The notes: generated from the sequence alone by a model not told the origin. Numbered from the stretch's first letter, positions 33,943 through 62,904 are shown. The stretch: DNA of 64,000 nucleotides from Okamejei kenojei (GCA_035221665.1 CM069159.1:19716001-19780000); one strand, 5' to 3'. Numbers and translations: made by a program.

Positions 33943-33991
33943 ATGCAACTCCTCCTGAAGCTGCTTTTCCTCCTGCATGCAGGAACACAAG
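33943..33991 (+). CDS. IgSF receptor exon 1: signal peptide MQLLLKLLFLLHAGTQ(G)
   Basis: AAGATG start, hydrophobic leader, phase-1 donor AAG|GCAAGT in frame with exon 2. Confidence 0.85.
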
Positions 33992-34760
33992 GCAAGTTAT
34001 GTTGATCGGACAATCTGTGGACCAAAGAGCCGTGATGGGGATCACCATTATGTGGCATATTGCATGGATAGGTAGTTCAGGACCGAGTCTGTTATTAAAA
34101 CAGCAAGTCGATTAATATCTCTGCTCATAGGCCGAGAAACCCGTCAAAAGATTTAATCTATATTTTTAATGTTGGAATAAAAGTTTTGCATATTCATTGA
34201 CTGCGATTGCCTGCAATTATTCAATTAGTTAAAGCATTTGAGATACAATTCGGTCACTATAACTCCATCAGAGAGCACAAAGCAAGAATCTTACGAAGGT
34301 GTAGAAACGTTGAACGACAGATTCCGGTTTGCAAGAGAAGACACAGCGTGCTGGAGCAACTCAGCGGGCCAGGCAGCATCCCTGGAGAACATGGATAGGT
34401 GACGTTTCGGGTCGGGACCCTTTTTCACAAAGATACTAGTATCTTTGCTTTTTCAGACATTGAAAAGTCATCTCATCCATGTGCTCCTGAGATGCTGCCT
34501 GACTCGCCGAGTTACTCCAGCCCCTTGTGTCTTTTCTAGCGTCCCAAGATCACGGTGCCACCTGCCACCGAATCTGCTGAGAGAAGGCATTTGCAACCAT
34601 TATGGAAGCGAGAATCGTTGTTTGAAAACGTCAGATTTGAATACGTTTCTTGTAAATATTGTTTCCGTTAGAAAACCAATCCCTTGTTCAGTGGGTAAAG
34701 TGGATGTTTATTGAACTACTAACGGGAGTATAATTGACAAATGTATTTATTTTCCACCAG

Positions 34761-35108
34761 GAGTTCCGCTAATCACAAATTTGACCCAGCCACGTGTGGT
34801 CAAGGTGTGGAGAGGCGAGTCCGTCACGTTAAACTGTACATTTACTTATAATGGAAGTGTGAATGGCTGGCTCCGCGTTTCATGGTATCGGACATTACCT
34901 GGACGGCCTGATGTTACTTGCAACACGAACAAATCGCTCTGCATTCCTCACCCCACCAGGGATGGTTTCAAAAACTGTACGGTATCACTGAAGATTGAAA
35001 ATGTATCGTTTGGTCATTCTGTTTACAGCTACATTTGTGCGGTGAATGTACCAAGTGTCTTCCCTCCAATTCAGGAAAGGGGCCAAGGAACACGAATACA
35101 GGTTTATG
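34761..35108 (+). CDS. Exon 2: V-type Ig domain with J-like G strand
   Basis: Acceptor ttttccaccag; LTQP..GESVTLNC..VSWYR..SLKIENV..YIC..GQGTRIQV; phase-1 donor G|gtaaag. Confidence 0.93.
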
Positions 35109-35909
35109 GTAAAGTATTTGCAATACTATGATGATCTCCAGTCTCTGCACTTTATGTTTAAGACATCGATAATGTTAAACGCAGTGACATTTGAACCAAG
35201 CTATTTACAGATACTTTAACAGAAATAATAGCAAGCAGACCCAATTAGAAATAAGATGAAATGAACACATTTTGTTTCAACCTAAATGAATAAGGCGTAC
35301 TTAAGATGGCACAAAGGGCTGGAGCAATTCAATGTGTCAGGCAGCATCCCTGGAGAACATGGATAGGTGACATATCGGGTCTAGACCTTCTTCAGACCAT
35401 GTTCCCCTGAGATGCTGACAGACCCGCTGAGTTATTCCAGCACTCTGTCTTCTTTTGTAAACCAGAATCTGCAGTTCCGTGTTTCACAGAGGTACTTCAA
35501 GGTTGGTGTTTCCAGCATTTTTTTGTAAAACACGGCTTGTGATATTGTTTCATTTGTTCCTAAATCGTATATGAATACCAACAGTGACACTATTGCTCCA
35601 TTTCCCTTTCTTTTCACTTTCTATTCTGTCCATACCAAAGGATGAGCTGGTTTTACAACAGTTAAACAAATTACTCTTTGAGATAGTTTGATTGACTGCA
35701 TTCAGTTAGGATTCAGTTTGTGATAGATCTTACTCTGACAATGGAGGAAGGGATGACAGGTCAGTTTGGGAATGGAAAAGCGAAGTGAAATGGATAGCAA
35801 TTGGCAGCTCCTTCCCAGAGTGAGCAATGATGGGTAGATGGGGATAGTACATGGAAGGGAACATTTTAAGGGGAGTTCACTTCTTGTACTAAGAATTAAT
35901 AGAAACAGA

Positions 35910-36820
35910 ACTTAGCCAAGTCAAGCTGTTTATTGTCATTGGCACAAGAACGGTGAGGTACAGGTGTAACAAAAATCTGCACACAGAAACATAAATTATA
36001 TGTAAATTGTTTATAAATCACATAAAATTCTACAAGACTAAAAAATGGAAGAAGACCTGTAAAACACAATAACAAAAACAAACAAGTCCATGGTGTTTCA
36101 TTGTCGTGGGAGGATTTGGGTCGTGTGGGTTGGTTCAAAAGAGGTGCAGGGAAAAGTAGTGGTTTCTGAACCTGGTGGTGTGATACTCTTGGCTTTTGTA
36201 CCTCGCCCTATGGTAACAGTGAGAAGAGGGCATGGCCTGGATGGAGAGATAATACATGCCACCATCTTGAGGCATGTAGATGGGGAGGCTTGTGGCTGTG
36301 ATTGCTTGAGCTGAGTCTAGCCTCTTGAGTTCCCGGGTATTGAAATTTCCATACCAGTCCAGGATGCAACCAGTCAGAATACTTCCTACAGTACATCAGT
36401 AGAAGTATCTTTGCATGTTGCATAACCTGCCAAATCTCTTTAACTTCGAACAAATTAGAGGCAGTGCCAGATCTTCTTCATGACTACAGAAATGTGCTCA
36501 GCTTACGAGAGGCTGTCATCCAGGAATTTGAAGTTGCTAACTCTTTCCACCATTGACCCAACATTAAAAACTGGCATGTTGTCTCCCGACTTCACTGTTC
36601 CAAAGTCAATGGTTCGCTACTTTGTTTTGTTGACCTTGAGTGAGAGTTTGTTGTTGCGGCACCATTCAACCAGTTGTTCCGTCTCTCTCTTGCACACTGA
36701 CTGTTCATCATCCATAATTCAGCTAACCATAATGGTGTCATTGTTGAGTTTATAGATGGCGTTGGAGCTATGCTTAGCCACATAGCTATGAGTGAGAAAA
36801 GAGTAGAGCAGGGTGCTACA
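35910..36820 (-). mobile_element. Degenerate Rex1/Babar-like LINE 3' part
   Basis: Minus-strand remnant YTHSYVAKHSSNAIYKL.NDT..EQLVEWCRNNKLSLKVNKTK..IDF. Confidence 0.7.
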
Positions 36821-37207
36821 GGGTTGGAAATTATATGACTGCCTTGGTCTCCTTTGTTTGCAACAAATAAATCTGAGGAGCAATTAAATTGCAGTGCATT
36901 AAATTATGTGAGGTCTCAACACACAAACCAGAAAGGACTTTGATCGCGTTGCCTGGAGTAACGTAGAGGCATAGATGTATATTAGCCGGTAGAAGAATTG
37001 GGCAGATGTTGTGAACAAATAAATTCACTCAATCAGTGGCAGTGACTGGAACTCATCACCTGAATGGGTAAAAGAAGCAGAAATCTTCACCAAATTACAT
37101 GTACCTGAATGAGCACTTGAAGTGCATCACCTGCTGGGCTTTGAACTAGAGGAGTGAGAGTAAAATAAAAGTATGTTTTAGTGCAGCATGTATTCAATAG
37201 TCCTGCC

Positions 37208-37442
37208 CAGGAGTTCCCAACCTTTTTCGTCCCGTTTACCCCTGGCAACTTTAATAGCACATAATAATGTTATTTCACTTATTTATGAACAACTAATGAT
37301 GAACAGATACCCGTATGCCAGAACCAAACACAGTCAGTCAATGAGAAAAAATATGTACAATATCCAGAATCAACAAATTTACCCCCTCGGTAGGCGAAAT
37401 CTACCCCTTGGGGTTAAATTTATCCCAGGTTGGGAACTCTTG
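37208..37442. mobile_element. hAT (Charlie-like) MITE
   Basis: 16-bp TIR CAGGAGTTCCCAACCT / AGGTTGGGAACTCTTG (15/16 match); TSD only partly preserved (TCCT). Confidence 0.7.
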
Positions 37443-37825
37443 TCCTATACCATAATTTTCTACAATGATTATCATTAACTCAAGCTTCCACTAATCTCTC
37501 ACTGAGCTGTTTTACTGTGCATTACTGTGCATTACGAGCATCGTCAATACTAACCAAAAAACTACCGCATGTCAGTCTGTGTGATATACATAATCTTATT
37601 TAGCCAGGATCATGGAATAATATTATAATGGTCCAGAATATATATTTGATCCTTGATGCTTCTCAGCTAAAGAAGGGCTCTATTATTACGATTCTACATC
37701 ATTAACTTAACATATGCTTATTGAAAATAGGGCAGAATTTTGGACAATTTACTCTGTCAGTAAGTTTCACTGACATTGAAATGTGTGGTATATAGTTTAA
37801 TACTTTATGCTTTATCTTCTCTCAG

Positions 37826-38116
37826 ATCTTCCAGAAATGTATATACGGGGTGATACTTTGGTTGCTGGTCATGAATCCACTCTAACCTGCTCTGTCAAGG
37901 GATTGTACGACAAGGATATCTCCTTTACATGGACATGCACCTCTACAAATATCACTGCGCCAACTTTTGAAACAGAAAGGAATGGCACACTAGTTGCCAC
38001 CAGTCATTACAAGATTGTCCCAAGAGTGGAAGACAATGGGACTGTTTGCAGTTGTCATATTTATCATTCCACTTTTGGACGACCAGCTGTAAATACAATC
38101 AAACTAAATATTATGT
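37826..38116 (+). CDS. Exon 3: C1-like Ig domain
   Basis: Acceptor cttctctcag; LTCSVKGLYDKDISFTW..NGTLVATS..EDNGTVCSCHIYH; phase-1 donor T|gtaagt. Confidence 0.92.
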
Positions 38117-39747
38117 GTAAGTATCATCTTTAACTTTTGAAGTATTCACTGTATTGCTAATCTTTGAATTCTTATTGTGTTGTGTTATAACTGATATGTA
38201 CTGTATATCACCATCTATACCAGTGTAACTGAATATCTACTTTACCTGCTTATTGACCCAGTCCCATTAGTTTTATCACTTACATTTTCTCTCATTTATA
38301 TTGTTCTCGGTTTCCTTTATTTTGCCTTTCTCTCTTGTCCTGTTACTCAGACCCAGTTTTAATTCACCTTTCTCAATTTCTTTAAATCAATCTGCCCCAA
38401 ATACTCTATCTTCTAACTATGATGATTATTTCCCAGATTTGAATCATTCTCAGTTAAGTTTGAAGCTTCCTTATAGATATCTCTTGGTAATCCTATGTGT
38501 GTGTCTCCCCATCTGAGGCAATCTTAAAGGCTAATCCTCTTAACCTTCCTTCTCAACCAGAGTTTTGTGACATTTACAGGGTGGATCAATATTCCTCATC
38601 CCTCTCCCTTCCACATTCATATTCTGTCCTATTCATTTTAGAATTGGACTTTTGTCATTTAAGCCCTCATTGTGTGTGGGTGCATTGATAAAAGTATTTC
38701 AAGTATAACTAATTGCTCCTTCTCCAAACTTATTGGCTACGGTCTCACAGAGGTTCTATGTTCCCTTTCACCAAAACTCACTTTCCTCTGTCCTTATCCA
38801 TCTCCTGCAACACCTCACCCTTTTGCATCTTTACTTGTTTTGTATGTCATATCTCTCCATTAAATGTATCTTTCTCTACCAACAAAAGTTGATTCTTCTC
38901 TCCCAGCTTTTGCAATGAGTGGTATCTTCTTCTCGCTATTTTCAATGCCCGTCTTATGTACCTGTCTTAACCCTTACGTCTTTGAGAGTTCATTGCCCTC
39001 TGTCCTGCATTAACTTTGTTTAACTCCTCTATTCATGGCCACACCAACAATATTCCCTTATCATATGTAGGAAGAAACTGCAGATGTTGATTTAAACCGA
39101 AGATAGGCACACAATGCTGGAGTAACTCAGCGGGTGAAGGGTCTCGACCCAAAGCGTCACCCATTCCTTCTCTCCAGAGATGCTGCCTGTCCCGCTGAGT
39201 TACTCGAGCATTTTATGCCTACCTTCCCTTCACAGGTGACCCTACTACTCTCACCATATGCAGGCGTATCAGTGATCATTTGTAGTAGCCGTAGATATCA
39301 CTTACAACCTCACAACAACCAGTGTTCCGACAGGTGAAGAAAATCACCTAAGAATTACATTAGTGGCTTCACTCTTCAAACTGTTAGGAATTTGGACCTC
39401 CACTTGCCACGTTTACCAAAACGCTTCATCTCTCTACCACCAGCTGTATAACCCTCGAACAATTCTACATTTCTCCAGTCGTAATGTCGAAGAATCTCAA
39501 CTTTCATCGTGCAAACGGTTCATTAAGCTCTACCATTCACTCCCCTTTCCTCTCTGCATCAATCCCTCACTCTCCATAGACAAGAACAAGCTTAGCTTTT
39601 TGTTTTACGTATATGATTCTTTCCAACTTGGCTTCAGTGGCAGGCCCTTGAGAATGATTAGCTCTCAGAAGTGCAAAGTTTGATTGTGAATAGCTGTTCT
39701 GTGTTTACTTGCATCTAAAATGAAGTGTACATTATCTTTAACATTAG

Positions 39748-40065
39748 ATGGACCACAAGATCTATTAATAACATACAGGTTGAAAGCAGTGGATATTTAT
39801 CGACCGATCAATGATAGCATCATCTTTGTTGCTGCTGATTCATTCCTGGAACTGAATTGTCGTGTAGATAGTAATCCGGTCTCCATTGTTACCTGGACAA
39901 AGGCCACGGAGAATCATAATGTAACGTTGCAAACTGGAGTCGGTTTCAACAGTTCAAAAGAATGGACACGTTTCCAGCATAAAGATGAAGGGATGTATTG
40001 GTGCACGGCAAAAAACGGCTACGGCTGGAGAAACAGAAGTATCTCGATAAACACAAAACAGAAAG
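39748..40065 (+). CDS. Exon 4: C2/I-type Ig domain
   Basis: (Y)GPQ..LELNCRVDSNP..VTW..DEGMYWCTAKNGYG; phase 1-1; donor G|gtaaat. Confidence 0.92.
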
Positions 40066-40480
40066 GTAAATAGAAATGTAATTATACATGTGCCTAGGTA
40101 ACAATGTTCATTGAGGTAGAATCATTCTTAGCAAATAAGACCTCAGCTTAATTAGTTCAATGTCTTTTTTCTTGATCTTAGTGATTGATCAATTGTAATA
40201 TTTGATTCATTTTACAATCATATATAGTAAAGACTATTTAATGCTGTCATCTTCAAATGCTTTGATTTTATGGTGTTTTTCCATAGTAGATTTTTAAAAA
40301 TTAAACATTAGAGTGCTGCAGTTTTGTTTATTAATGGCAGTGTATCTCTTCTGGAATTGAAGGAAGTATGTACCCTGCTGTCAAATAAAGTTAAACGATT
40401 GCAGTGCTTTTTAAAAACTTTTTATGTTTCTCAGAGTTGAAACATTACATTTACTTGACATCTTGAATTTTCTTTCACAG

Positions 40481-40579
40481 ATTATCCTTTTCTTTATGTT
40501 CTGGTCCTGATCCCCCTAACTACAGCCATCATTTTGGCAATAATATATGTTTATCTGAACTGCAAGACACAACGGAAAG
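40481..40579 (+). CDS. Exon 5: transmembrane segment
   Basis: Acceptor ttttctttcacag; DYPFLYVLVLIPLTTAIILAIIYVYLNCKTQRK (no charged TM residue); donor AAG|gtaaca. Confidence 0.9.
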
Positions 40580-40827
40580 GTAACACTTAAAATAAATCGT
40601 TGGTTGTAGGTGTTAACCTTAAATCGACAACAATAGCCAGCTGAAAAATAATGTGGTTTTCAGTCAATCGTGTTATTACACAAACCTTTTTGATATCCTG
40701 TGTGTTGCTTGTTGGGTTAATTTCATGGCCAAGCCTCTTTGGTTAAATAGGTGTTACATTTCAAGTTAGAGGATCATGAAAGATCTTGGTCAATATTTTC
40801 CAGTAATGCCCTGATCTCAAAAATGAA

Positions 40828-41136
40828 TTCAGTTTAGTTTAGAGATACAGCGTGGAAACAGGCCTTCAGCCCATCGAGACAGTACTGGACAATTATCATC
40901 CTTATGCTAGTTCTATGTTATCGCACTTTCGCATCCTACATACTGGGGGGGAAATTACAGAAACCAATTAACCTAAGTCTTTGGAATGTGGGAAGAAACC
41001 AGAGCACCCGGAGAAAACCCATGTGGTCACAGGAAGAATGTACAAACTCCATGCAGATAGCACCCGTAGTCAGGATTAAACCTGGGTCTCTGGTGCAGCA
41101 GGTCTGTAATTCTATGGCTGTGCCACTGTGCAGCCC
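40828..41136 (-). mobile_element. HE1-like tRNA-derived SINE
   Basis: Minus strand has tRNA-like head, V-domain-like core TTTCTCCGGGTGCTC.GGTTTC.TCCCACA and GGGCTGAAGGCCTGTTTCC..TATCTCTAAACTAAAC tail. Confidence 0.8.
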
Positions 41137-41169
41137 TAATTAAAAATAATATTATTTATTAATTCATAG

Positions 41170-41212
41170 AAAAACACCAAACTTGGCAAGCCATTTTCAA
41201 AATTGGAATCAG
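41170..41212 (+). CDS. Exon 6 (predicted cytoplasmic microexon EKHQTWQAIFKIGI)
   Basis: catag acceptor, AG|gtacta donor; phase 1-2; frame restored by exon 7. Confidence 0.5.
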
Positions 41213-41847
41213 GTACTACATTACAAAAGATGCAAATGTTTTGAATATGATTAGTATGTTGGAGTAGTGTAGACATTTTGAGTGAGTGCATTTTGGAAAT
41301 AAAAATTAAAACTTTTTATGGGAAATATTTAAATTAAGATAAAGAGATGCGCTACAATGTGGAAAAACAAGTAGTTCAACTATGTTCTGTTTTGCATTCT
41401 AAGGACATTGATTTTATTTTCTGCTGTTCTTTGAGTCTCTACAAGTCTTTCAAATGTATTGACCATTATAATAGAAAAGGAAATGATCTTGAACTTGTTT
41501 GACCTACTGAGGTTAGGGAGGAATTTTGTAGAGGAAATTCATTTCTGGAAAAAGTGCAGCATGAATTCTCCACAAAGCCACCAGGACGTGGAATTATTCA
41601 TTGAGAGACTTGAAAGGACTCAAGTCTATTTAGTTAACTCTGCAACGGTTAAAAGGATGAAAGGGCAAGTTGAATTATGAGAGAATGACATAGCATTTCA
41701 CAAGGGGAGCAGCAAGAAAGTTTTGAAATGAAATTCGTTGAGAGTAAATTTAGAAAAAAAAGTCTAATTCTCTGTTTGCTATTAACAGTTTATGATGACT
41801 TTGAAAATAATTTAGTTGTTTGGAAAAAAGAAACCTTTAAATACAGC

Positions 41848-41945
41848 AGGTAGACAAAAGTGCTGGAGAAACTCAGCAGGTGGGGCAGCATCTATGGAGA
41901 GAAGGAATAAGCGACGTTTCGGGTCGAGACCCTTCTTCAGACTGA
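41848..41945 (-). repeat. Penelope-derived repeat arm with minimal hammerhead-like core
   Basis: Minus strand agt-CTGAAGA-A-GGGTC-TC-GACCC-GAAA-C-GTC-gct. Confidence 0.7.
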
Positions 41946-42631
41946 TAATACTGCAGAGTAAGACTGTTGAGCCAATTGGATTGATTGGATTTGATTGGAC
42001 TTTTCCCTGTCGTATATGATTCTTGATATTAGGCTGCGTGACAGCTTATCTGCCCCTCAGCTTATTAAATCATTATGTGAAATTGAAGCTTGAATGCCAT
42101 CAATGCCAGTGGAATATGTTTCCTGCTGTGAATCTTATCACTGGCGTTTCTTTATTGTCACTGCTTTGCTATTTCTTTTCACTTGCTTCACTCAAGGCTA
42201 AAGTACACCATCCCCCATGCATTTCCTGTTCAAGAGTGCATTGGAATCACCCAAAAAAAAAATCCTCAAAACAGAGGAATGCCTTGCCTTCCACTGCAGT
42301 ACATTTCTAGTGCAATGTACAGGCCTTTGTTAACCAAAGCGTTATGTGTTCTGGCCACTACGTCTCCGTATTTCTCATCACCCAGATCTTTTCCACTTGA
42401 ATGTACAGTATTATCTCATCACAACTATAGACCTGAAAATTGAAACACGCAGATTTCGGAAAAAATGAAATGCTGCTTTACAAAACCAGGCCAGGTTTAG
42501 AGGAAATCAGGTCCGAAATACATCCACCTTGATGTGAGAAGGAATCTATTGATGCTAATCCATTCTGGACACTGTGCAAGAGAGAATATTTAGCATATGT
42601 ATTTTGGGAATTTTGTTCATAGCTGCAAGTT

Positions 42632-45955: not shown

Positions 45956-47116
45956 TAATACCCCTAGTATATGAAGCATTTAAAAAACCTCTCTGATATT
46001 CTCAGTGTATTTTGTAACATTTTTACAAAGGTCGGGTTTTATTTCCTGAATTGTTGCTACTGGTGTTCAGCATGGAAACATGATGATAATTAACTTTCAA
46101 GATATATTCAATTGTACAATGGATGACTGCATAATCTGATTTGCTACTGATGATTGAATGAGGAAACAAAACCTTTTGCTGTTAGTTAGTTTGTAGCACA
46201 TGGTTTTGTGAATTAATCTCAGCAGGAAGTCTTTATGTAATATTTCCTCTGCTTATGGCAACAATGCAGCATGCACAGAGTTACCCTGAAGTATCGAGCG
46301 GCACATGGGTCTGCAGAAGGACTTCTCACATCCAGTGTTATAAAGATGAAACTATCATCAAGCAGGCCAATTATGGCTTTACAAATAATTAACAAGGGAG
46401 TGCACATGGTATTGCTGAAGATAATACTCAAATGAGGCTTGGTTTGCCCATTCCACAAGCTCAGACAGTGTTAAAGATTTGGTAATCCTATTTTAAAGTG
46501 TTATAGAGTAATGCAGCATGGAAACAGACCCTTCAGCCCAACTTGACCCAACCAAGATGCCCCATCTTCACAAGTCCCACCTGCCCATGTTTGGCTCTCT
46601 AAACGTTTCCTATCCATATGCATATTTGCTGTGTGTTCTGTAAAGCATTGCATTATCAATGACAACATAAGTGATATTGGATGAATGTCTTGGTTTGTCT
46701 TAAGCATTCCTGTGAGTTACTCCAGCACGTTGTGTCCTTTTGTGTAAACCAACATCTGCAATCCCTTGTTTTTACACTGATAATTCTGCTGGAGTGGACT
46801 TGGAAGGACCCAAGATACAGTAGAAAGGTAGATGTGGGAAGCAGAGGGCAGTTGAGTGAATGTCAATACAAACTGATAGTTAAAAAAGTTGCTTGGGTGG
46901 AATACTTGTTCTAGTTCACATTAGGTACTGAAGATGGTAGAAACATTACTCACTCTCTGAGCAATCACCTCTGCTGGTTGGGCTAATTGCTTACTGATAT
47001 TGGGAAGTGCCTTTTAACAGTTTGTACCACAATGAATAATCTTACGATTTCCTGGCAGTGCACCGAAATAGCAATAACTTGTCAAACTGCTTTCTGGTGG
47101 ACTAAAGAACATATCA

Positions 47117-48862
47117 GCGGCACTGAACACACTGCCGATGTCATTAATAGGCAGAATAAACGCGATAAAAATGATCTTCTTACCACAAATATTGTACCTA
47201 TTTCAATCAATACCAATATACATACCTAAAAAATTCTTCAAAAAATTAGATTCTGATATTATAAACTTCATATGGGATTATAAATCACACAGAATTTAAA
47301 AAAAAAAACACTTGTGTAAATCTAAAGAATCAGGGGGACTGACACTCCCTAACTTATTGTATTATTATTGGGCAGTGAATATTAAAAATATAATCTACTG
47401 GTTGGACAGTTCTGCCCAACAGGTAGATTGGATAAGAATGGAGAAAGAGGATTGTTCCCCTTATAATATAGGAGCGATCCTTCTTTCTCCGATAAAACTG
47501 AACAATGTAATATACAAGAAGAATCCAATTATTCATAGTATAATACGAATTTGGAAACAAATAAAATTAACTTTAAAATTAAGAAAATTATCGCTTCTTT
47601 CTCCAATAGCTAATAACCCCTCATTCAAACCATCCATTATTGATAAAACGTTTACCCATTGGGAAAGAATAGGAATTAAAATGATGGGAGATATGTATGA
47701 AATGGGAAAACTTTTATCATTCCAAATAATTACAACTAAAATATAATTTGAAAAGTAATCAATATTTCAAATACCTTCAAATTCAAGATTATTTGAAAAA
47801 GTATATACAAGGATATCAAACTTTAACCCCAGATCTACTGGAGGAAGGAATGAATAGAAAGGCAGAATCAAGCAATTTAATATCTTACTTATATAATATA
47901 ATTCTAAATATAGAAACACCAACGACAGAGGCAATTAGAAGGGACTGGGAACAAGAGTTATTGATAAAAATTCCGAACGATGGATGGGATAAAAATTTAT
48001 TATATGTAAACAAATGTTCAATGAATGTAAGACATAACCTAATTCAATTTAAAATTTTACATAGATTATATTATTCGAAAACAAGACTGAATAAAATATT
48101 TTCAAATGTTTCCCCCATCTGCGACAAATGTCTAACTCAAAATGCCACTATAGCACATTCCTTTGTCTCTTGTACAAAACTGTATACATTTTGGAATGAA
48201 ATTTTTGGAATTTTTACAAAACTATTTAACACAAAATTGAACCCTAATACTGAATTGATTATCTTTGGATCAATGGAAGAGGGAAGTAAACTAACTATAT
48301 TCCAAGAAGCTTTTCTTAATTATGGTCTAATAACAGCGGAAAAAACTTATACTTAAATTTTGGAAAAACGCACCTACGCCAACATTCAAAATGTGGATCT
48401 CAAACATGTCTGCAATGCTACATCTTGAAGAAATGAGATTCCTCTTACTAGGCAAAGTAGACCAATTCTTAAAGATTTGGTCTCCGTTTATCAACTTTAT
48501 ACAAGCATATGGTGCAACATAACATAACCTTAGAAATTAAATGTTTAGAACTGGGTGACGGATGGGCAAAAGTATGAGATAGGTAGATCTCTCCTAATCT
48601 CTCTTTTCTTTTTACTTTTTCCTTCTCTTTCAATCTTTTAACTTCTCACCTCTGTCCTTTATTTTTTTGTTTTTGTTTTCTGTTTCTACTCGCTTGTCTA
48701 TCTATTCCGACACTCTTTATTTCTCTTTTCTCTCACTGTTCTTTTATTATTGAACTAAAAGTATGAAGTTGTACAAGAATGAGAATGTGTATTTATGTAT
48801 TAGGTACTTAAGTACCAGACTACTGTACTTACTTCTAACAAAAATTTAAAAAAAACAACAAA
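47117..48862 (+). mobile_element. 5'-truncated L1 (intronic)
   Basis: ORF2 C-terminal ORFs 47312-47746 and 47748-48356; poly(A); TSD AAA[G/A]AACATATCA 47104-47116 / 48863-48875. Confidence 0.88.
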
Positions 48863-51800
48863 AAAAAACATATCATTATGCAATATCGTGTTCTGTGTGA
48901 AATTATACTTACTTTACTTAATCTCTTTAAATGAAGAACATAAAATTATTGTAGCCGTTTGCTGCATAATCTATACAACATGTTCATGACACTCCCAAGT
49001 TTGGGTGCAGTAGTTTTGTCAGAGAATTGGCCACAGTATTATGGTTGTTAACATGTTAATTAAATGAAAACTCCTGAATACTCTGAGTATGTTATTCTAG
49101 TTACAACCAAAGCATGAAAGACGGCCGGACAAGTCCCTAGGGAAAAGTACTTTCAAGTTAATTCATTTTTGATTAAATCTTATCTATTGTCTTCATAATT
49201 TTATATTATCTTCATGGGTGCAGTTGACCATCATATCTTTGTTTCACTTCCCTCTTAAACCAGCAAAGACTCAGCTATACTGAGTTGTAGGAGTTGTATT
49301 GTGACAATTCAGCTGTGCAAGTGTTTCTCCGTGTTTGCTGAACACATGTGATGCTCCACATCTACATATTCAGTCAAACGGAGGACACATGGATTTGAGT
49401 CAGTTAAGACAGTGACCACAGCAATGAGTCAAGAGACCTTTAACTCATTATCTTGGCCCGGGCATCATGAACAGATACTTTATGATAAATGAAAGCCATT
49501 ATCAAGCACAATCAACTAGCAGGATAGCAGTGAAGACTATTTTTAGAAGCATGGTTATATTATTGTGGTCTAAAGCACCCTTTAGTAGGAATTGTAACAA
49601 ATTGATGCTCCATTGACAAAATTCATTCTGGCAATAAACAGAACTTTAAAAAAACGATGGAAAAGATGGACTGTAAAGCTAAAATATAATTACTATGGTA
49701 ATTAAAGTACATTTGAACCTAATATTTTGATAATTTAAAATATAGGTCAGGTTGAATATTTTTTCAGTTTGTTGGCTTCATTTTTGTTTTAGTGATTGTT
49801 CCCAATATTCAGCCTTGCTGCATGCGCACCTGTGTTGGAGATTTATACTTTAAAACTGGCAAATGGCTTTTGATGCACACTAAGATAAAGCCTTTGTTTT
49901 GGATCTGAATAACCTAGAACAGTGAAAAGCTCCAAGAAAGTTGGGGCTACGTGTTCATTCTAATGTTATAGGAGTAATCCAAAAACCTATTGGATACAGA
50001 TTTTTAGATCTAGAGGCCATTGAGTTTAGTTTAGTTTCTTGTTTAGTGTCACGTGTACCGAGGTACAGTGAAAAGCTCATGTTGCCTGCTAACCAGTCAG
50101 CGGAAAGACAATACGTGATTACAATCGAACCATCCACAGTGTTATCCAAAAGTTATAACTCAGTTATATAATTGGACTGATGACTGAACTCAGAAGTACA
50201 ATGGGCAGTTTTGCAGAACACTCCTAAATTGCCCTCTGCAACGCACAAGATCGTTATTGATTCTTTATGCCCAACAAAGTCCATTTGCAGAAAATACAGA
50301 CACATACTCTTGATCCACAAGAAGACCAAGGTGCAAACCTTTTACTCAAGGGTTTCTCAAGGAATTCCTCTCTGAAATTCACTCCATATATCATTACAGC
50401 CCAGAGAGCAGTTAATCACATGGCACAACCGTTGGTAGTTTAAAGTAACATATATTGTTCATTGTCAATAATATACACACTTCATCCTGAGATGTGAATC
50501 TGTGTAACTTTATCGGAATGGAATCTGGATTTCCCAATTTTAATGAGGAGTGAGTGAGCAAACTAGTACTGAATTAATTAAAACTGTGAAAGATGCAGGT
50601 TGACATTGCCTTTTGTGTTGAACGTCTCTAGAGTAGGATGCAAGCCCACAGCCTTCTGACAGAGTGTTACCAAACCAGGGTGATGCTTTCTACCGAGGTA
50701 GCAAAAAGCCAATGCTAATAATGCCTCAGGAGTGACTGATCTAATAATCACAACTGACAAGCTATGTGTTGAAATTAGCATTCGATTGTCAAATACATGT
50801 TTTCTTTCCCTTTCCCCAGATCCAGTCAATGTGACCATTGAGCTGAGGTAAGAACTTTGATTTAATTTTAACATTTTGTGAAAACATTTGATTAATATAT
50901 TTATAATATTGTACAATTTGTTTAATGATTTCACATTCCACCGGATCACTCAAGTACTAATTTATATCATTCCCAGAACCCCAAATTCGACTGAAATGCA
51001 GTAAATGAGAAGTTGATGCTAACAGTGTCAGAAAATTACTGCAAACCCTCATGATTTAACATATCTCAGAAGTAAAAGCTGACTTGTAACAACAGAAATC
51101 TGTGTAGGGATCTGTGAAAAGCTTCATTTGTCTATGTTTATTACACACGTCCAATTCTTATAAGTTTGTTATTCACAGAAAATATAAGAAAATGTAATTG
51201 AAAACCCACAAAGGGAACAATGCCTATCCAAAATGTGTGACAATGAGATGGGTGTTTCCCAGTGTGTGATAGAATTAATGCTTTCAATTGGAATTAGAGG
51301 AAGAACTAAAGACACTCTAAAGGCATTAATTGCACTGACAAAACGCTGGTAGCTCAGAATATTTCACTTTCACCTTCACCAGTCCCCATATGCAACTCTG
51401 CATACATTGCTGAGGTGTCCAGCAGTTTTCTTCCAAACATCTAACTACACTTTAATCCCTGAGAATATTTCCCATCTGAGAGTCCAAGCATTAGGTGTCT
51501 TTCAGGTGAAGTGTAAATTTCCATTCTCTCAACCCCTGTTACATCAGAGCCCAAAATACCTAAGATGAACGATGATTAGAAATGTCACAACTGCTAACAC
51601 TGTTAGCTGTACTAACTGGTGATGACTCGAAACTGTGCCTGCTCAAGCTTTTTGTTAGACGATCAGTAATTCCCCTCGAACATTCAGTCTGCTCACCAGC
51701 AACTTGTAGTTTTTTATGCATTATTAATTTTAACAACACTAATTTGTTCAAATGATGGAATTCAAGAGAGGAAAATCCTTATGTCCCATTCCCATTAATA

Positions 51801-52169: not shown

Positions 52170-52213
52170 TCCTGAACACATGCACAGGGATGCAAACTGC
52201 AACAAGGAGTTAG
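52170..52213 (+). CDS. Exon 7 (predicted cytoplasmic microexon SPEHMHRDANCNKEL)
   Basis: Long pyrimidine tract + caag acceptor; donor TAG|gtatgt; phase 2-1. Confidence 0.6.
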
Positions 52214-52235
52214 GTATGTATATTATATGCAACTG

Positions 52236-54650: not shown

Positions 54651-55140
54651 AAGGTGAGGAGGCCTTCCAGTCACGGTGAAATGGCAATGGGGGTGGGGGG
54701 AGCGGACGAGGAGATTATATGAATGTGAATGGAAGGAATTTAGCTGCAATGCAATAGTTTGTAGAAAGAATCATTGTACTCACATGTTTGGCCAAGGTCA
54801 GTTGAATGACCAGTTCACTTAGCATCGCCAGGCCCCTATCCAGCTCCATAGAACATCAGCACCATCTAACAGCACTAGAGCCTAACCTTCAAATGACCCA
54901 CATGCATTACCATTACACCAGTCCTCACACTCAGATATCACAGCTTGTGCACATTGCTGGCATTTCAACCATGGGAAGCACATATATTGGGCATCGTTCA
55001 ATAACTTACTTTGTTCGTGTTTAAAGGTCAAGAGATGCAAAACTATTACGAGCATCACCACTTAGCAAGCCACCAAGGCAGTTGCTGCTTATGGTGTTAG
55101 GCTTGCAGTAATTCTCCACTATAGAGTCAGTAATCTTCCA

Positions 55141-55463
55141 TGGCATGGTGATGCAGCTGGTAGAGCTGCTGCCTCACAGCACCAGACACCTGGGTTTAAT
55201 TCTGACATTGATTGCTGAATGTGTAGAGTTGGCACGTTCTCCCTAGAAGCATGTAGGTTTCTCCCGGGTGATCCGGCTTCCTCCCACATTCCAGAGATGT
55301 AGTTTAGGTTGCTTCTGTAAATTGCCCCAAATGTTTAAAGAGCGAGTAAGAGAGTGGAATAACCTAGACCTAGTGTGAATGAGAGAGCAATATTCAGCCT
55401 GGCCTCGGGGGGGCCAAAGGGCCTGTTTGCATGCTGCATCCCGAAAACTAAAACTAAATTAAA
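55141..55463 (+). mobile_element. HE1-like SINE
   Basis: Box A/B-like head, central core, GGGCCAAAGGGCCTGTTT..ACTAAAACTAAA tail. Confidence 0.8.
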
Positions 55464-55763
55464 AACCATCCACACTGTGGACACTGGGGAGAACTGCAGA
55501 GGAGTACTTGAACAGGTATGGGGAAGATAGATATTAAGCAGATGCACGTTCATTGATTTTTGTTTTTTTGCGCAGTAGCTGGATGAATAAATGTGGTCTA
55601 CTATGTGGAGTGAAATATAGTCACAGCGTCATATAGCATGATAACCACCCTTTGGCCCTACTTGCCCATGACAACTGTAGTGCTCCAGCTACACTAGTCC
55701 CACCTGCCTGCATTTGCCCCATATACCTTGACCTTCCCTATCCATGTACCTGTTCAAATACCT

Positions 55764-56712
55764 ATTCATGATTTAGATGAAGGAATTACAATTAGCAAAT
55801 TTGCAGATGACGCAAAGCTGGGTGGCAGTGTGACTGTGAAGAGGATGCGATGAGGATGCAGGATGACTTGGACAGGTTGGGTGAGTGGGCATATGCATGG
55901 CAGATGCAGTATAATGTGGATACATGTGAGGTTATCCACTTTGGTGGCAAGAACAAGAAGGCAGATTATTATCTGAATTGTGTCAGATTAGGAAAGGGGG
56001 AAGTGCAGCGAGACCTGTGTGTCCTTGTACATCAGTCAATGAAAATAACCATGCAGGCAGTGAGGAACGCAAATGGCATATTGGCCTTCATAATGAGAGG
56101 ATTTGAGTATAGGAGCAAAGAGGTCCTACTGCAGTTGTACAGGGCCATGGTGAGACCACACCAGGAGTATTGTGTGCCATTTTGGTCTCCAAATTTGTGG
56201 AAGAACATTGCTATTGAGGGAGTGCAGCGTAAATTCACGAGGTTAATTCCCGGGACTGTCATATGATGAAAGAATGGAACGACTGGGCTTGTATTCACTG
56301 GAATTTAGAAGGATGAGAGGGAATCTTATAGAAACATATAAAATTATTAAGGAATTGGACACGCTAGATGCAGGAAACATGTTCCCGATGTTGGGGAAGT
56401 CCAGAACCAGGGGCTACAGTTTAAGAATAAGGGGTGGGCCATTTAGAACTGAGATGAGGAAAAACATTTTCAACCAGAGAGTTGTGAATTTGTGGAATTC
56501 TCTGCCTCAGAAGGCAGTGGAGGCCGACTCACTGGATTAATTCAAAAGAGAGTTAGATAGAGCTCATAGGGCTAGCGGAATCAAGGGATATGGGGTGAAG
56601 GCAGGAATGGGGTATTGAATGTGGATGATCAGCTGCGATCACATTGAATGGCAGTGCTGGCTCGAAGGGCCAAATGGCCTACTCCTACACCTATTGTCTA
56701 TGTAACTATGTA
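55764..56712 (+). mobile_element. CR1 RT 3' part, inserted in an older opposite-strand CR1 (55620-55763, 56713-56910)
   Basis: SKFADD.KL, MQDDLDRLGEWA..WQMQYNV..C.VIHFG, LYRAMVRPH.EYC..FWSP. Confidence 0.9.
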
Positions 56713-58817
56713 TGTCTCTTAAATGTTGTTCTGGTATCTGCCTCAACTACCTTCTGTGGCAGCTTGTTCCATTTACTCACCAGCCTCTGTGTGAAAGCAT
56801 TGCCCCAAAGATTCCTATTAAATCTTTCCCTCTCACCTTAAATCTATGTCCTCTAGTTTTTGATTCCCCTACTTATTGGGTAAAAATAAACTCTGTGCAT
56901 CTGCCCTGTCTATTCCATCTTTATCTTGAATTTGCATCTCTGAGCAAAGTGAGTGCAGTGAAAATCCTCTCTGGGAAGTTCAAATAATCACAAGGATAAA
57001 AGCTGCTGCTGCTCTATGCTCCCTGCAAAGGCAGAGTGGGATGAATGACATGGTGAAGCCTGCAACCAGATTAAATCATTAAAATCCCCCCAAAGGTTTG
57101 TTCATCCCTTTTTTGCAACATATTTCCAAAAGGGTTCCTATTTGCATATTCACCATAATCAGCAATGGAATATTCACATCTGCAAAACATGTACGTCTAT
57201 CTTGCACGTTTTGAAGCTACAAAGCCGCTCAGCCTTGTAATTTTCACAGAACAGTATATTAAATTAGTTGCCAGAATCTCTTTACTGAGAACACTACAGC
57301 ATGCTTTATAGTGAAGTAGTTTACGTTCATTTCTAAGCATATGCAACCACCTGCTTTTTTCAAATACATCAATGTGAACAGCACCGTTGAGACTTTCTTC
57401 AGAGAATCAATAAGATAAGCCTTTAGACACGATAACAAACGTTAAGACTCAACGGTTATTACTACGTCCCCAGTAGTGGTGTCAGAGCTACATTCAATTC
57501 TGAATAACATTTGTGGTTAAAAAAGCACAATGAAGCGATACTGCAATTTTAGGTCAAGGGAAGGATATGACAATAATGCTCTGTGTTTGATGCTGATAGT
57601 TCTCAGCAGGGGCTGGCAGAGTGTGGATCAACTTACTACAGCTATGGTCAAGAGCGAAAAAATTAAATACTCAGAACTTATGATCCTAAATACTAATTAT
57701 TGCTAGAATGATATAGCACAGAAACAGGCCTTTTGCCTGCAAAGGCCAATCAGACCATTGTACTTGTCTATACTTAGCCCCATTTGCTAGCATTCAATCC
57801 GTATTTTTTTTTCGGAATAAATACAAAAGATGTTAACGAATGTAAGGTGGAATCAGGAACAAAGACGCAAAACAGTCAAAAATTGTACATATGAAAGTAT
57901 CACCACAACAAAACATTGAGCCAAACCACAGTAGAAAACTTCCAAAGACAACCTCCTTATAGTTCAGCTGATCTCTGAGGCAAATCAGAGGTCAGATACC
58001 AAAAACATTTAAACCTCCTTTCCACAATGGACTAATGAACTGGTGGTGAAATGCTTGACTGTTGTTACTAAAACATCCACATTCATATTAATTAGGTCAC
58101 CGCCACTGAATATAAAGGAAATTGTTAGTATGTGGTTTACTTATTTTTCAAGGTGCTTTTAATTAATTTTATCTTCTACTTTAAATAATTGTTATATTTT
58201 AAAAAAAGTTTTAAACCTTTTCCAGCTGCTTTTCATGTTCTCAGAGGCATTGAGAATCAGCTTGATATGGCCTCTAAAATGTATCCAGAGGTTAGTGTGG
58301 ACAGGTGAGGACGTTAGGCAGTAAGTCCAGGCACTGGGTCAAAACTAGAACAGCACCGGCCAATATCCAAGCATGGCTGAGTGATCAACTTGTACTCTGT
58401 GAACTTGTGCCAGGGAATATTAATGTTAAGCATATCGTTTCAGTTGGTAGCACTCAAAACAGATTATAGAAGTACAGGCACTTCGCGTTTTATGCATGTT
58501 TGATTTATGTGTTTTTGAAATAACGCACGTGCTTAATTAATACCAATATCAAATTTATGCATTGTATTTTTGAAATATTGCGCTCAAAGTTACACCTGTT
58601 TAAATGTATTTATTTAATTTATGCATCTTTGAATTACATGCTCCATTTCAGGAGCGTAACCCCTGCGTAAAGTTTAAAGCACTAAAAAACAGCCTTATCG
58701 ATCTTTGCTGGTATTTATTCTTCACACTTAGCTCCTCACATCCTTATCTAAACTATCCACATGCTAGATTAGTTTATTATTACTTCCGATATTCATGCAT
58801 TCTGATTTGCTTGGCAG

Positions 58818-58877
58818 ATACAATATATGCAGTGGTCAGGAAGAATGGCCCACCAATCAGCAGACCGTTTTCAACAG
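58818..58877 (+). CDS. Exon 8: DTIYAVVRKNGPPISRPFST (ITSM)
   Basis: ttggcag acceptor, CAG|gtaaga donor, phase 1-1. Confidence 0.85.
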
Positions 58878-58955
58878 GTAAGATAAAATCCAGGGACTTC
58901 AACTTCTTCCATATATTACAATAAATGCTTCACATGTTCGCTCTTTTCCCCACAG

Positions 58956-59053
58956 AGGTTGCCTTTGTTAATGAAGGGAACAGTGAAGAAGAAGTCTCCT
59001 ATGCGGACATTGTTATCCACAGTCCAAAACAACGCTACAACCAAAAAGCCAAG
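58956..59053 (+). CDS. Exon 9: EVAFVNEGNSEEEVSYADIVIHSPKQRYNQKAK (ITIM)
   Basis: cttttccccacag acceptor, AAG|gtattg donor, phase 1-0, acidic run before VSYADI. Confidence 0.87.
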
Positions 59054-59079
59054 GTATTGATAATTGCCTCAGAGTATCT

Positions 59080-59359
59080 AGGTCATTTAAGACTGAGCTG
59101 AGAAAAAACTTTTTTACCCAGAGAGTTGTGAATTTATGGAATTCCCTGCCACAGAGGGCAGTAGAGGCCAAATCACTGGATGGATTTAAGAGAGAGTTGG
59201 ATAGAGCTCTAGGGGCTAGTGGAGTCAACGTATATGGGGAGAAGGCAGGCACGGGTTATTGATAGAGGACGATCAGCCATGATCACAATGAATGGCGGTG
59301 CTGGCTCGAAGGGCCGAATGGCCTCCTCCTGCACCTATTTTCTATGTTTCTATGTTTCT
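59080..59359 (+). mobile_element. CR1 3' fragment
   Basis: FFTQRVVNLWNSLPQ; (TTCTATGT)n tail. Confidence 0.88.
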
Positions 59360-59464
59360 AGAAAGTCCCCTTGTTTATTTATCCTTGATGTATCTAAAAT
59401 ACATCAGCAATTGCAGGAAACTCATAGCTATATCCCCGGAGAGGAATTATATCCAACCAAGTAC

Positions 59465-59658
59465 ACATTTCCCTGTGGCCGCAGAGGTTTTCTCTATTTG
59501 TTTCAGTTTCCTCACACATTCCAAAGACATGTAGGTTAATGGCTTCTGTAAAATTGTCCCTCGTGTGTTGGATAGAACTAATGTATGATGCATCATAGGT
59601 CAGCAGAGACTTGATGTGCCAAAGGGCCTGCTTCCACACCATGTCTCTAAACTAAACT
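59465..59658 (+). mobile_element. Partial HE1-like SINE
   Basis: Core + GGGCCTGCTTCC..TCTCTAAACTAAAC tail. Confidence 0.7.
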
Positions 59659-61954
59659 CAATCCTTTTGCTTTTGGCATAGATGTAAAAATTGTTGATTG
59701 ATTCACATTGCCTTGTTTTAGTGACAACACTATCCTGCCCCATAATCGACATTATAACTTTAGAAAGCTCCTTTGGCATAATGAAATTTTCCAAAGGTGG
59801 TTCATTATCAAACAGGATTTGCCACTGAACAGCAAAATAATGTTAAAACAGATCACCAAATTTGGTCAAAGGAGTCGGATTAAGGAAGGTGAAGTAGGAA
59901 AGTAAAGAGATTTAGTGAGTGGATAATTGTTCTTACAGTTTAATCAGCTGAAAAATACAGTTGGCAATAATGGAAAAAATAACCAAGATAAAAGTTAGAT
60001 GTGAGCAGATAATGATGTGGGTTCAAAACAGATAATGCTGGAAATACTCAGCAGAACATGCAGCATCTGCGGAAAGAGAAACCATCAAAGTTTCAGGTCA
60101 GAGACCTCATGTCAGAATGGTTGTAAAATGACGTTGCATTATTTTAGCGGCCCCACCATCCCGCTTCGTAACCCACAGAACAACTTTACAAAGCTCCCTT
60201 AGCCCAGTAGGATGCCTCAAAGTGGGTCATTGGAAAGTTTTCAAGCAGAACAGTTTCCATTTTCTCAAATGTTACCCGACCGACTGAGGGAAGGATCTCG
60301 ACCAGAAACGGCACCCATTCCTTCTCTCCAGAGATGCTGCCTGTCCTGCTGAATTACTCCAGCTTTTTGTGACTATCGTCGGTTTAAACTAGCATCCGCA
60401 GTTCCTTCTCACGCATTTCCTGTTTTTACTTTAGTTTTCCAGCATTTGCAGTTTTTCTGACTACCTCTGTGGTCTGCAGGGCTGGCAGAGATGGAAAGGA
60501 ATAGGGCAGGTTGAGGCTTTGAGGAGAGGGCGTGGCTTCAAAACAAAGATGACTATTTTAAAATTCAGCCATTGCTTAACCAAGAATTATTGATCTGCAG
60601 CAAGAATGTATATGATGGCTGAACAGTAATTGTTGCGAGTTAAAATGTGAATTTCAGTATCGAGTTGTTTTGGGTATACAGGGATGAGATTGTGGGAGAT
60701 GCGACCTGAGTGCCTGTGGTGGTAAAGCATCGGTAACAGATGAACTGAGGCACGGGCCATGTTGGACAATATAACAGAAGTGGAAATAGTCAGTCCGAGT
60801 GTTTGCTGTGTGGTTAGAGACATGGCTGTGCTTGGACTCGGATATATTCATATTCATCGATGTACTGATCTTAACCACATTCCTTGCCAGATAGCACCTG
60901 ATCCTTCAAACTTCAAAAATTATTTTCATATTTTCTTAAAACACAGATGGAGGCCATTCAGCCCATCACGTCTCTGCCAGCTCTCAGCACAATCCAATCA
61001 TTCACTAGCCCATTCATTTTTATGTAACCTATTCTCTGGTAAATTAACACCTCCCCCCCCCCCCCCTCCCTCCACTCACCTCACAACTATGTTAGATGCA
61101 CTGCACAGGAGCCAATAACATTATAAACCTATACATCTTTAGGATGCGGGAAGGACCCAGAGCAGATGTAGGAATCCTCATGGTCACATGGAGTATTAAC
61201 AGATTCCACCCAGTGAAAGACCACAGTTCAGGTTTGAACCAGATCATTGGAGCTGTGAGACAGCTGTACTGACTACAGTGCCACAATGCCATCCTAATGT
61301 AAAGGTTTAATACACAGAACATTTCCCATCATTGATCATTGATGCTCCAAATTTAGTTTTGAGCTGAAGTGGAAACGGATGTCAGTGCCTTCAGTATCAA
61401 CATTTTGATAATATTTTTCCTAATGTACATAGAACAGTACCACACAGAGCCAGGTGCGTTGGCCCACAAAGTACTTGCCAAGCACAATGTTAAGTTTATC
61501 AAATCTCCCTTGCCTGCACATCATCCATATCTCTCAATTCCTTGCAAAACCATGTGCCGATCTAACTGCCACTATTGTATCTTTTAAATACCACTAACAT
61601 ATTTAATGCTAGTCTTGTATCTAATAGAGAACCTGTATATAGTTCTCCACATCTCAAATCATCATAACATTCCTAACAGTTCAAATTTAACTGATTTGAA
61701 TACAAATCTGTTTATTTTTAACTGAAAGTAAATTAGATAGTCTCCATAGCATTTAGCGGATATGTCCTGTATTTGACATTCCAAAATACATTAATACCCG
61801 TCTGTATTAAATCCACCTTCCACTCCTCTGCCCAATTTTCCAACTAATCAACGTTCTGTTTTCTTTCACAACCCTCTTCATTATCTATTATTCCATTAAT
61901 TTTTGTGTCGTCAACTAGTTTATTAATCAGTCCACCTACTCTCTCATCTAAAGA

Positions 61955-62265
61955 TAGCCACAAAATGCTAAGGTAACTCAGTGGGTCAAACAATATCTTT
62001 TGGGATCACACTGTCCCAAGCCAACAATTGGTCTATCAGGGACCATCCTGCCGAGGTCATCTGTTGCTGGCCCTGATTTGTCTTTTCGTCTTTTCTTGCT
62101 TCCTGCTCTCCCCACCCCCACCACCCCCATACAATCAGTCTGAAGAAGGGTCCCGACTTGAAACATCACTTATCCATTTTCTCCAGAGATGCTGCCTGAC
62201 CTGCTGAGTTCCTCCAGCATTTTGTGTCTATCTTTGTTATAAACCAGCATCTGCAGTTCCTTTTT
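61955..62265 (+). repeat. Penelope 3'/pLTR-derived repeat
   Basis: CAGTCTGAAGAAGGGTCCCGACTTGAAACATCACT followed by the shared arm; related copies at 34306-34540, 35308-35480, 39068-39222, 60288-60415. Confidence 0.75.
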
Positions 62266-62766
62266 ATTACTTTCTCATCCAAGTCATTTACAATGCCATT
62301 CACCACTGAAAAATGGAAAAAAAATCCCTCAACTACTATCATCTTTTAAACTAGAAAATATCGTAAAATAGTAAGACTTTTTCAACATATTACAAGATGG
62401 CCCTTCTATTACTATGATAGCCTTTGCTAACTAACATCCACGCAGGCATTATTTATAGACATTTCCAGATAATGTGTGAATCATCAGGAAAATCACAGAT
62501 AATATGGAAAGTTTGGTGCTCGTGCCAACCACTGTGTTTTTCACAAATTTAAATATAACATAAATATAAAATTGCTGATTTGATTTAAACCGGTACCAGT
62601 TGGCTCAAATGAGTGGATAAATCAATTTCCATTCCACAAGGTACATTTTGTTAGTTTCCTCTATCCACAGTTACTGCCTGACCGAAACATTTCCAGCAAT
62701 CTTGATTTTATTCCACTTGCCCTCGGCACGTGATAGTGATTCTTCCTCTTTTTTGTGTTCATTCAG

Positions 62767-62904
62767 CAAATTTGCGACGTCATGGACAAAAATGCCAAAA
62801 AACAGTTACCGTATGTTTACAGCTCATCTCCTCGTCATCATGTGGATGATACATCGGAATATTCTGTGGTGCGAGTTTCACGCCAAGACTTGAGGACTGT
62901 GTGA
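62767..62904 (+). CDS. Exon 10 (last coding): QICDVMDKNAKKQLPYVYSSSPRHHVDDTSEYSVVRVSRQDLRTV*
   Basis: Strong pyrimidine tract + ttcag acceptor, phase 0 matching exon 9, SEYSVV motif, TGA 62902-62904. Confidence 0.8.
   Translation, partial: QICDVMDKNAKKQLPYVYSSSPRHHVDDTSEYSVVRVSRQDLRTV

Follow-up and report, generated by a model that had tools for sequence, protein, structure and literature searches.

A ten-exon gene for an immunoglobulin superfamily receptor with an inhibitory-type tail in the skate Okamejei kenojei, a member of a gene family of fishes without an established name

The window analysed here is a stretch of 64,000 nucleotides (nt) from the skate Okamejei kenojei (GCA_035221665.1 CM069159.1:19716001-19780000), and all positions given below are counted from its first letter. 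Its plus strand carries a ten-exon gene, with a coding span from an ATG at 33943 to a TGA ending at 62904, the same start and stop that had been proposed in an earlier note on this DNA. We put at roughly 70% the probability that this is an intact, transcribed gene encoding a type I membrane glycoprotein of 490 amino acids (aa) of the immunoglobulin superfamily (IgSF), that it is an orthologue within an ancient gnathostome family, and that its cytoplasmic tail is, by its motifs, inhibitory. Taken together, the gene structure, the homologues and the spliced contigs described below are far beyond chance.

The ten exons total 1473 nt (i.e. 490 codons and a stop) in a frame without internal stops, and the translation aligns to a 490-aa RefSeq model from Leucoraja erinacea (P0153) with 454 of 490 residues identical and no gaps. 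The stop-free, in-phase protein of the earlier note is borne out by this gapless match, although its length was given there as 495 aa; likewise nine of the ten proposed exon lengths were exact and bounded by canonical splice sites, the tenth, exon 6, having 28 nt and not 43. Acceptors are AG at all nine exons that agree with the earlier reading (exon 1 being the start exon), and donors are GT except at exon 1 (AG/GCAAGT). Exon 1 (33943-33991, 49 nt) provides the ATG and a hydrophobic signal peptide, MQLLLKLLFLLHAGTQ, and ends in phase 1 at this GC donor; its residues are identical to those of P0153 (16/16) and the leader is conserved in all orthologues. The three long exons that follow each encode one immunoglobulin (Ig) domain and are in phase 1 at both ends: exon 2 (34761-35108, 348 nt) a V-set domain with the germline-joined J motif GQGTRIQVY, exon 3 (37826-38116, 291 nt) a C1-set domain and exon 4 (39748-40065, 318 nt) an I-set/Ig_3 domain. 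Exon 5 (40481-40579, 99 nt) contains the end of the stalk, the transmembrane helix and the basic stop-transfer sequence CKTQRK.

The remaining exons, all on the plus strand like the preceding ones, encode the cytoplasmic tail. Exons 6 and 7 were placed by mapping full-length homologues onto the window, using tblastn and a peptide scan. Exon 6 (50820-50847, 28 nt), assigned on homology and splice sites, encodes the peptide DPVNVTIEL, which is found in all orthologues and is identical to P0153 (9/9 residues); its acceptor has a strong polypyrimidine tract and its donor reads GTAAGA. For a 43-nt exon 6 there are many mechanical candidates (e.g. 41170-41212), none of which encodes the peptide conserved in orthologues; the shorter exon does not change the downstream frame, 28 and 43 being equal modulo 3. 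Exon 7 (52170-52213, 44 nt) encodes SPEHMHRDANCNKEL, with 14 of 15 residues identical to P0153. Exon 8 (58818-58877, 60 nt) carries a motif of the immunoreceptor tyrosine-based switch motif (ITSM) type, D-TIYAVV, with Tyr396, and exon 9 (58956-59053, 98 nt; 33/33 residues identical to P0153) carries an ITIM (immunoreceptor tyrosine-based inhibitory motif), EE-VSYADI-VIH, with Tyr428. The coding part of exon 10 (62767-62904, 138 nt) contains the ITIM-like SEYSVV (Tyr477), YVYS, the C-terminus -QDLRTV and the stop, and is followed by a 3' untranslated region (UTR) at 62905-63698, this being as far as transcript contigs reach.

A further short coding segment lies in intron 5 on the plus strand (46779-46823), where DNSAGVDLEGPKIQ is followed by a stop; it is 78% identical to the C-terminus of a 380-aa Rhinoraja model (P0001). 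From its sequence this segment looks like a relic, or an alternative terminal exon of a tail-less isoform, the acceptor here being TG and not AG.

A search of sequencing runs with the V exon returned four runs from two studies, and these were aligned to positions 58500-64000 only. Three contigs, X1 (2109 nt), X4 (1559 nt) and X2 (232 nt), pass straight from exon 9 to exon 10, that of X4 without any difference from the window. The alignments of all three break at 59051/62765, which is equivalent to the junction 59053/62767 because AG is shared by both sides. The depth in the exon 8 bins equals the value expected if the X1 and X4 contigs include exon 8 and exclude intron 8, whereas in none of the four runs is there any depth over unique intron bins, and the covered intron sequence consists of transposon copies only. 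Upstream of exon 9 the contigs continue for 1264 nt (X1) and 1298 nt (X4), the lengths expected if exons 1-8 (1237 nt) are preceded by a short 5' UTR of 31 or 65 nt. In the 3' UTR the X1 contig extends to 63509 and the X4 contig covers 62971-63698. As the contigs are spliced, the introns empty and the assemblies small (80-178 million letters), we infer that the runs are of RNA, i.e. transcriptomes. Between the X1 contig and the window there are 19 differences over the 745 positions of 62765-63509 and none over 100 positions of exon 9; the three that lie within the coding part of exon 10 (62814, 62844 and 62856) are all synonymous, and the divergence may be allelic or between populations.

Two other features of these alignments were observed. 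The 232-nt X2 contig (58939-59051) begins 17 nt inside the 78-nt intron 8, yet intron 9 is spliced from it; the intron 8 sequence could reflect partial retention, there being an in-frame stop in that intron, or an unspliced precursor. Intronic repeat copies (59052-59419, 60156-60523 and 61996-62363) are covered to a contig depth of 10^4 to 10^6 in each of the four runs; they belong to transposon families that are transcribed and very abundant, and give many spurious joints between copies.

For the domain assignments the window exons were searched one by one, while the full-length searches, the fold and the tree used P0153 and other database proteins. The V domain matches the Pfam V-set (2.7e-10), and in the Protein Data Bank (PDB) it comes nearest to the V domains of lambda light chains (5e-7). 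Besides the canonical pair Cys42-Cys109 it contains a second, conserved pair (Cys77/Cys89), Cys70, which is specific to the species, and six N-glycosylation sequons. The second domain scores 34.6 bits against Pfam C1-set (cut-off 21) versus 15.6 bits against the CD80-like C2-set_2, and in the PDB it is most similar to constant domains of IgA and IgG (2e-9); it contains Cys154-Cys209, Trp168, the motif VCSCHIYH and three sequons. Of seven family members scanned, six scored higher on C1-set than on C2-set_2, and the seventh, from Callorhinchus (P0180), matched neither; the gap is clearest in ray-finned members (62 versus 46 bits and 59 versus 41 bits). The third domain matches Ig_3 (4.9e-10) and I-set (6.8e-7), the Pfam scan of exon 4 giving no C1-set match; its PDB matches are contactin-1 (8e-13), MAG (3e-11) and Siglec-8 (4.5e-4), and it has the motifs YGP, SNPVS.V.W and YWC..N.YG and four sequons. 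The 13 sequons counted in the earlier note are thus all present in the ectodomain, and one further sequon is cytoplasmic.

Two resemblances of the V domain to known receptors were considered and set aside. Its FG loop reads P-x-x-x-P-P, which recalls the CTLA-4/CD28-like FG loop (Y/F-P-P); elasmobranchs all keep both prolines but vary at the aromatic residue, and neither Callorhinchus nor the ray-finned members have the motif. As the loop is kept only within elasmobranchs, it gives no grounds for B7 binding or for a CTLA-4-like ligand. An NKp30-like affinity was suggested only by the human sequence and one automatic name and is not claimed.

When a profile of 13 orthologues was searched against the PDB, V and C1 aligned as one unit with Ig light chains (profile positions 23-218 versus chain residues 3-201), and MAG and Siglec-8 were matched over domains 2-3; its 60 best matches included no chain of a nectin, CADM or SIRP. 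The AlphaFold model of P0153 shows seven-strand domains with moderate confidence, a helix at 338-364 and a disordered tail. Foldseek with this model returned MAG, nectins, Necl-4, CD22, SIRP-alpha, NCAM and titin at 12-19% identity, and since these matches are equally good across families they demonstrate a three-Ig ectodomain without separating the families. The nearest ESM Atlas neighbours were the CD22, MAG and Siglec-6 clusters by features and nectin-4, nectin-3-like and CADM1/3 by structure.

The transmembrane helix contains no charged residue, as would be expected for an inhibitory, rather than an adaptor-coupled, receptor. The cytoplasmic tail comprises about 125 residues and three tyrosine motifs (TIYAVV, VSYADI and SEYSVV), each on its own exon. 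The ITIM-bearing class was defined by (I/V/L/S)-x-Y-x-x-(I/V/L) in the tail, and the skate protein combines at least one such motif with a type I IgSF topology and the uncharged transmembrane helix, the motifs being invariant across 13 orthologues. In six of seven pairwise species comparisons conservation was highest in the tail, which holds an E-E-V-x-Y-A-D-I-V-I block that is invariant in 13 orthologues, as are the Tyr, Ala and Val of the first motif. Tyr396 and Tyr428 are 32 residues apart, a spacing compatible with a tandem-SH2 phosphatase. Searches with hidden Markov models, together with the transmembrane and motif checks, thus support the layout described in the earlier note (V with a J motif, C1, I-set, transmembrane helix and an ITSM/ITIM/ITIM-like tail). 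The union of ectodomain and tail likewise stands, the tail exons being part of the same protein in other species and being spliced in the transcript contigs.

In SIRP-alpha, PD-1, PECAM-1 and Siglecs, ITIM/ITSM phosphotyrosines recruit SHP-type phosphatases, and a comparable sequence of events is proposed as the most likely one for the skate receptor. Its V domain would bind a putative ligand, upon which the tail tyrosines would become targets of Src-family kinases; once phosphorylated, the ITIM/ITSM pair would recruit the tandem-SH2 phosphatases SHP-1 and SHP-2, possibly with SAP-type adaptors at TIYxxV, and activating signals would be dampened in the receptor-bearing cell. The C-terminal T-x-V may in addition tether the receptor to a PDZ scaffold.

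When the C1 exon was compared with 1.84 billion representative proteins, one skate protein was 76% identical and several shark and ray proteins about 52%; in all of these the C1 domain occupies the same position, and the full sequences carry the same tail. Full-length searches found the family in 17 other chondrichthyan species of 15 genera (Leucoraja, Rhinoraja, Mobula, Narcine, Hypanus, Hemiscyllium, Rhincodon, Stegostoma, Cetorhinus, Carcharodon, Scyliorhinus with two species, Heterodontus, Heptranchias, Pristiophorus and Mustelus), and in the chimaera Callorhinchus too. Ray-finned members with the same layout of V, C1, I-set, transmembrane helix and tail occur in Scleropages, Arapaima, Polyodon, Lepisosteus and Acipenser, with shorter, partial models in Anguilla and Megalops. 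These members keep the extra V cysteine pair and the third-domain motifs YGP and YWC..N.G, and in the osteoglossiforms Scleropages and Arapaima three tail tyrosines follow one another as in the skate protein (DTVYA, LIYADI and SIYSDV). The restriction to cartilaginous fishes implied by the earlier note therefore does not hold, since gar, sturgeon, paddlefish and bony-tongue fishes all hold members of the same architecture. No tetrapod or derived-teleost member was found, in word-limited searches that are no proof of absence. The sole architecture variant among the orthologues is that of Hemiscyllium ocellatum (P0155; 610 aa), in which a tandem duplication of V gives V-V-C1-I.

In a maximum-likelihood tree the chondrichthyan members form (Callorhinchus,(batoids, sharks)) with strong support, following the species tree, and the ray-finned members fall outside them, Polyodon on a long branch. 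As the tree holds both chondrichthyan and ray-finned members, the family is older than the split between cartilaginous and bony fishes. The earlier note had called the receptor unassigned, but it is not unseen: many species have RefSeq and Gnomon models of it, with names that mislead. The chondrichthyan models are automatically named Siglec-6, -8, -12, -13, -14, MAG-like or 'uncharacterized', and the ray-finned ones CADM1/2-like, Siglec-6, Schwann cell myelin protein-like, ROBO3-like, MAG-like or PTPNS1-like. No paper on the family was found in the literature searched.

Several points weigh against an intact, transcribed gene with an inhibitory tail. The sequencing runs are labelled 'probably DNA', and the evidence for junctions 5-6, 6-7 and 7-8 comes from homology, from the length of the contigs and from calculations of depth. 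The inhibitory signalling proposed through SHP phosphatases is read from the motifs alone, by analogy with other receptors. The residue at position -2 of the first motif is T in skates and most species but I in whale shark and catsharks, so that a 'switch' (ITSM) function is not conserved across the family, and the C-terminus, -RTV here, is -RTA in many sharks, a weaker PDZ ligand.

Elsewhere in the window, about 17 kb upstream of the gene, lies a FAM110-like coding region on the plus strand (16156-16831). Within its open reading frame (ORF; 16156-16689), residues 110-172 match Pfam FAM110_C with 28.1 bits (cut-off 27), and the conserved end motif ..IQWLYGCKS.. is found in another frame at 16724-16831; the region is a frameshifted gene, a pseudogene or the result of an assembly slip, and it may serve as a synteny marker. 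Dense transposon debris fills most of the remaining window, at 1-33000 and in the introns; among it are a reverse-transcriptase fragment on the minus strand (27371-27817), a tyrosine-recombinase (DIRS-like) ORF on the minus strand (18020-18676), a zf-RVT piece (47748-48353) and coiled-coil, L1-type ORF1-like ORFs (2510-3190 and 25002-25916). CA/TG-rich simple repeats surround an assembly gap (819-961).

The ectodomain has a similar size and the same order of domains (V, C1-like, I-set) as those of nectins, CADM1-4 and PVR, and the skate protein could thus be a divergent nectin or nectin-like (CADM, PVR/CD155) adhesion protein, acting mainly in cell-cell adhesion and recognition, with its ITIMs a PVR-like addition. 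PVR also carries an ITIM. Such an origin would agree with the Foldseek matches of the P0153 model to nectin-3, nectin-1, Necl-4 and CD155 (1e-14 to 1e-12), with the nectin-4, nectin-3-like and CADM1/3 models being the nearest by structure in the ESM Atlas, with the CADM1/2-like names given by Gnomon to sturgeon and paddlefish members, and with the C-terminal T-x-V, which resembles a PDZ ligand. However, MAG, CD22, SIRP-alpha, NCAM and titin are equally good structurally (12-19% identity), and the 60 best PDB profile matches, which lack any nectin or CADM, include MAG, Siglec-8 and Ig light chains. Domain 2, in the skate exon and in six of the seven members scanned, scores higher on C1-set than on C2-set_2, the model under which nectin domain 2 falls, and the V domain, which best matches Ig lambda V, has a true G-x-G-T J motif. 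In the tail, which ends in QDLRTV, no afadin (E/A-x-Y-V), 4.1/EYFI, A-x6-G or T-F/Y-P motif was seen. We regard membership of the nectin and nectin-like family as improbable.

A chondrichthyan or early-fish counterpart of SIRP, in which VJ-C1 is combined with an SHP-1/2-recruiting ITIM tail and an I-set domain stands where tetrapod SIRPs have a second C1, is equally unlikely in our judgement, although the likeness is considerable: both have a non-rearranging, J-like V domain followed directly by C1, a type I topology, an uncharged transmembrane helix and ITIM-type tyrosines on separate small exons. Two unnamed fragments aside, the best single-domain matches of the C1 exon outside the family are annotated SIRP-like or V-C1-C1-repeat proteins (from alligator, Dermochelys 'PTPNS1-like' and Xenopus 'SIRP-beta-1-like'), and this affinity to reptile and frog proteins with SIRP-like V-C1 repeats may be taken as a lead, not a test. 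One sturgeon member of the family is itself named PTPNS1-like, but automatic names are unreliable; similarly VSYADI and SEYSVV resemble ITYADL and SEYASV of SIRP-alpha, but ITIM motifs converge easily. Among the listed Foldseek matches SIRP-alpha and -gamma have the highest query TM-score (0.33), level with a titin fragment, and no SIRP chain is present among the 60 best PDB profile matches. The FAM110-like ORF 17 kb upstream of the gene would suit a SIRP-like neighbourhood, human FAM110A lying near the SIRP cluster on 20p13, but this ORF is frameshifted. The third domain is Ig_3/I-set and lacks a C1-set match, so that the V-C1-C1 order of SIRPs is not found, and the tail has three motifs and a C-terminal T-x-V as opposed to the four tyrosines of SIRP. 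By analogy, the mode of action of the skate receptor is nevertheless likely to be the same as that of SIRP.

A genuine Siglec, i.e. a sialic-acid-binding lectin as named in the RefSeq models, is disfavoured and barely credible, despite the Gnomon names (Siglec-6, -8, -12, -13, -14 and MAG-like), the matches of domain 3 to MAG and Siglec-8, with both of which the profile aligns across domains 2-3, the CD22, MAG and Siglec-6 clusters as closest ESM neighbours by features, and a tail layout of ITIM plus ITIM-like motif as in CD33-related Siglecs. In the V-set domain of Siglecs there is an intrasheet B-E disulphide, a Cys that bonds to domain 2, and an Arg on strand F that is essential. By contrast, the skate V domain has the ordinary B-F pair (Cys42...Cys109), the conserved Trp and the J motif without the Siglec pattern, its F strand (SVYSYICAV) lacks an Arg, and the V exon has no Siglec in its top 60 PDB matches; moreover domain 2 is C1-set, compared with C2-set domains only in Siglecs. 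With no Siglec cysteine pattern, no F-strand Arg and a C1-set second domain, a lectin function is not expected.

The per-domain Pfam, PDB and profile searches uphold the view of the earlier note that no single known family accounts for all three domains, and the same holds against the other V-I and VJ-C1 families with which we compared the receptor. Teleost NITRs have a J-like V, an I-type domain and an ITIM tail, and are described only from bony fishes; the skate receptor, with its C1 domain between V and I and a family that includes chondrichthyans, is not one of them. The skate gene resembles in plan the non-rearranging elasmobranch genes UrIg, a secreted protein of VJ and three C1 domains, and UrIg2, which has nine or more C1 domains and a transmembrane segment and for which no ITIM is described (PMC12227049), in that all share a germline-joined VJ exon, a split leader and a C1 domain next to it. 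UrIg and UrIg2 are defined by VJ plus at least three C1 domains, whereas the skate gene has one C1, then an I-set domain and an ITIM tail, and its family, unlike theirs, is also present in ray-finned fishes. The top match of the C1 exon outside the family was a white-shark multi-C1 'titin-like' protein, its score being summed over 10 repeats. Tetrapod PRARP-type genes (PMC10751288), compared by description, are alike in the VJ-C1 core, the transmembrane helix and the ITIM tail but have only two Ig domains, whereas the family described here adds an I-set domain and has a conserved tail of its own.

The reading we prefer is that of an orthologue, intact and transcribed in this skate, of a gnathostome family that is without a name in the literature searched and is mislabelled by automatic annotation; it is a receptor of known kind and not a new system. 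More speculatively, the family might be a surviving offshoot of a pre-RAG VJ-C1 stock, its V-C1 core being sister to the SIRP and antigen-receptor cores and its third domain and tail being shared with the Siglec and nectin world, and might represent an ancient paired (inhibitory and non-signalling) system lost in tetrapods and most teleosts; we think this rather doubtful. A checkpoint role and a bearing on the origins of antigen receptors, both put forward in the earlier note, may be inferred at most. Non-rearranging VJ-C1 genes are the presumed raw material of antigen receptors, and each conserved family of them is a data point. The wrong names now attached to this one (Siglec, MAG, CADM and ROBO3) would mislead surveys of Siglec or nectin evolution. 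As the tail is conserved almost to the residue, the family probably does something important in these animals, and comparative immunology gains a defined candidate inhibitory receptor in the oldest jawed vertebrates.

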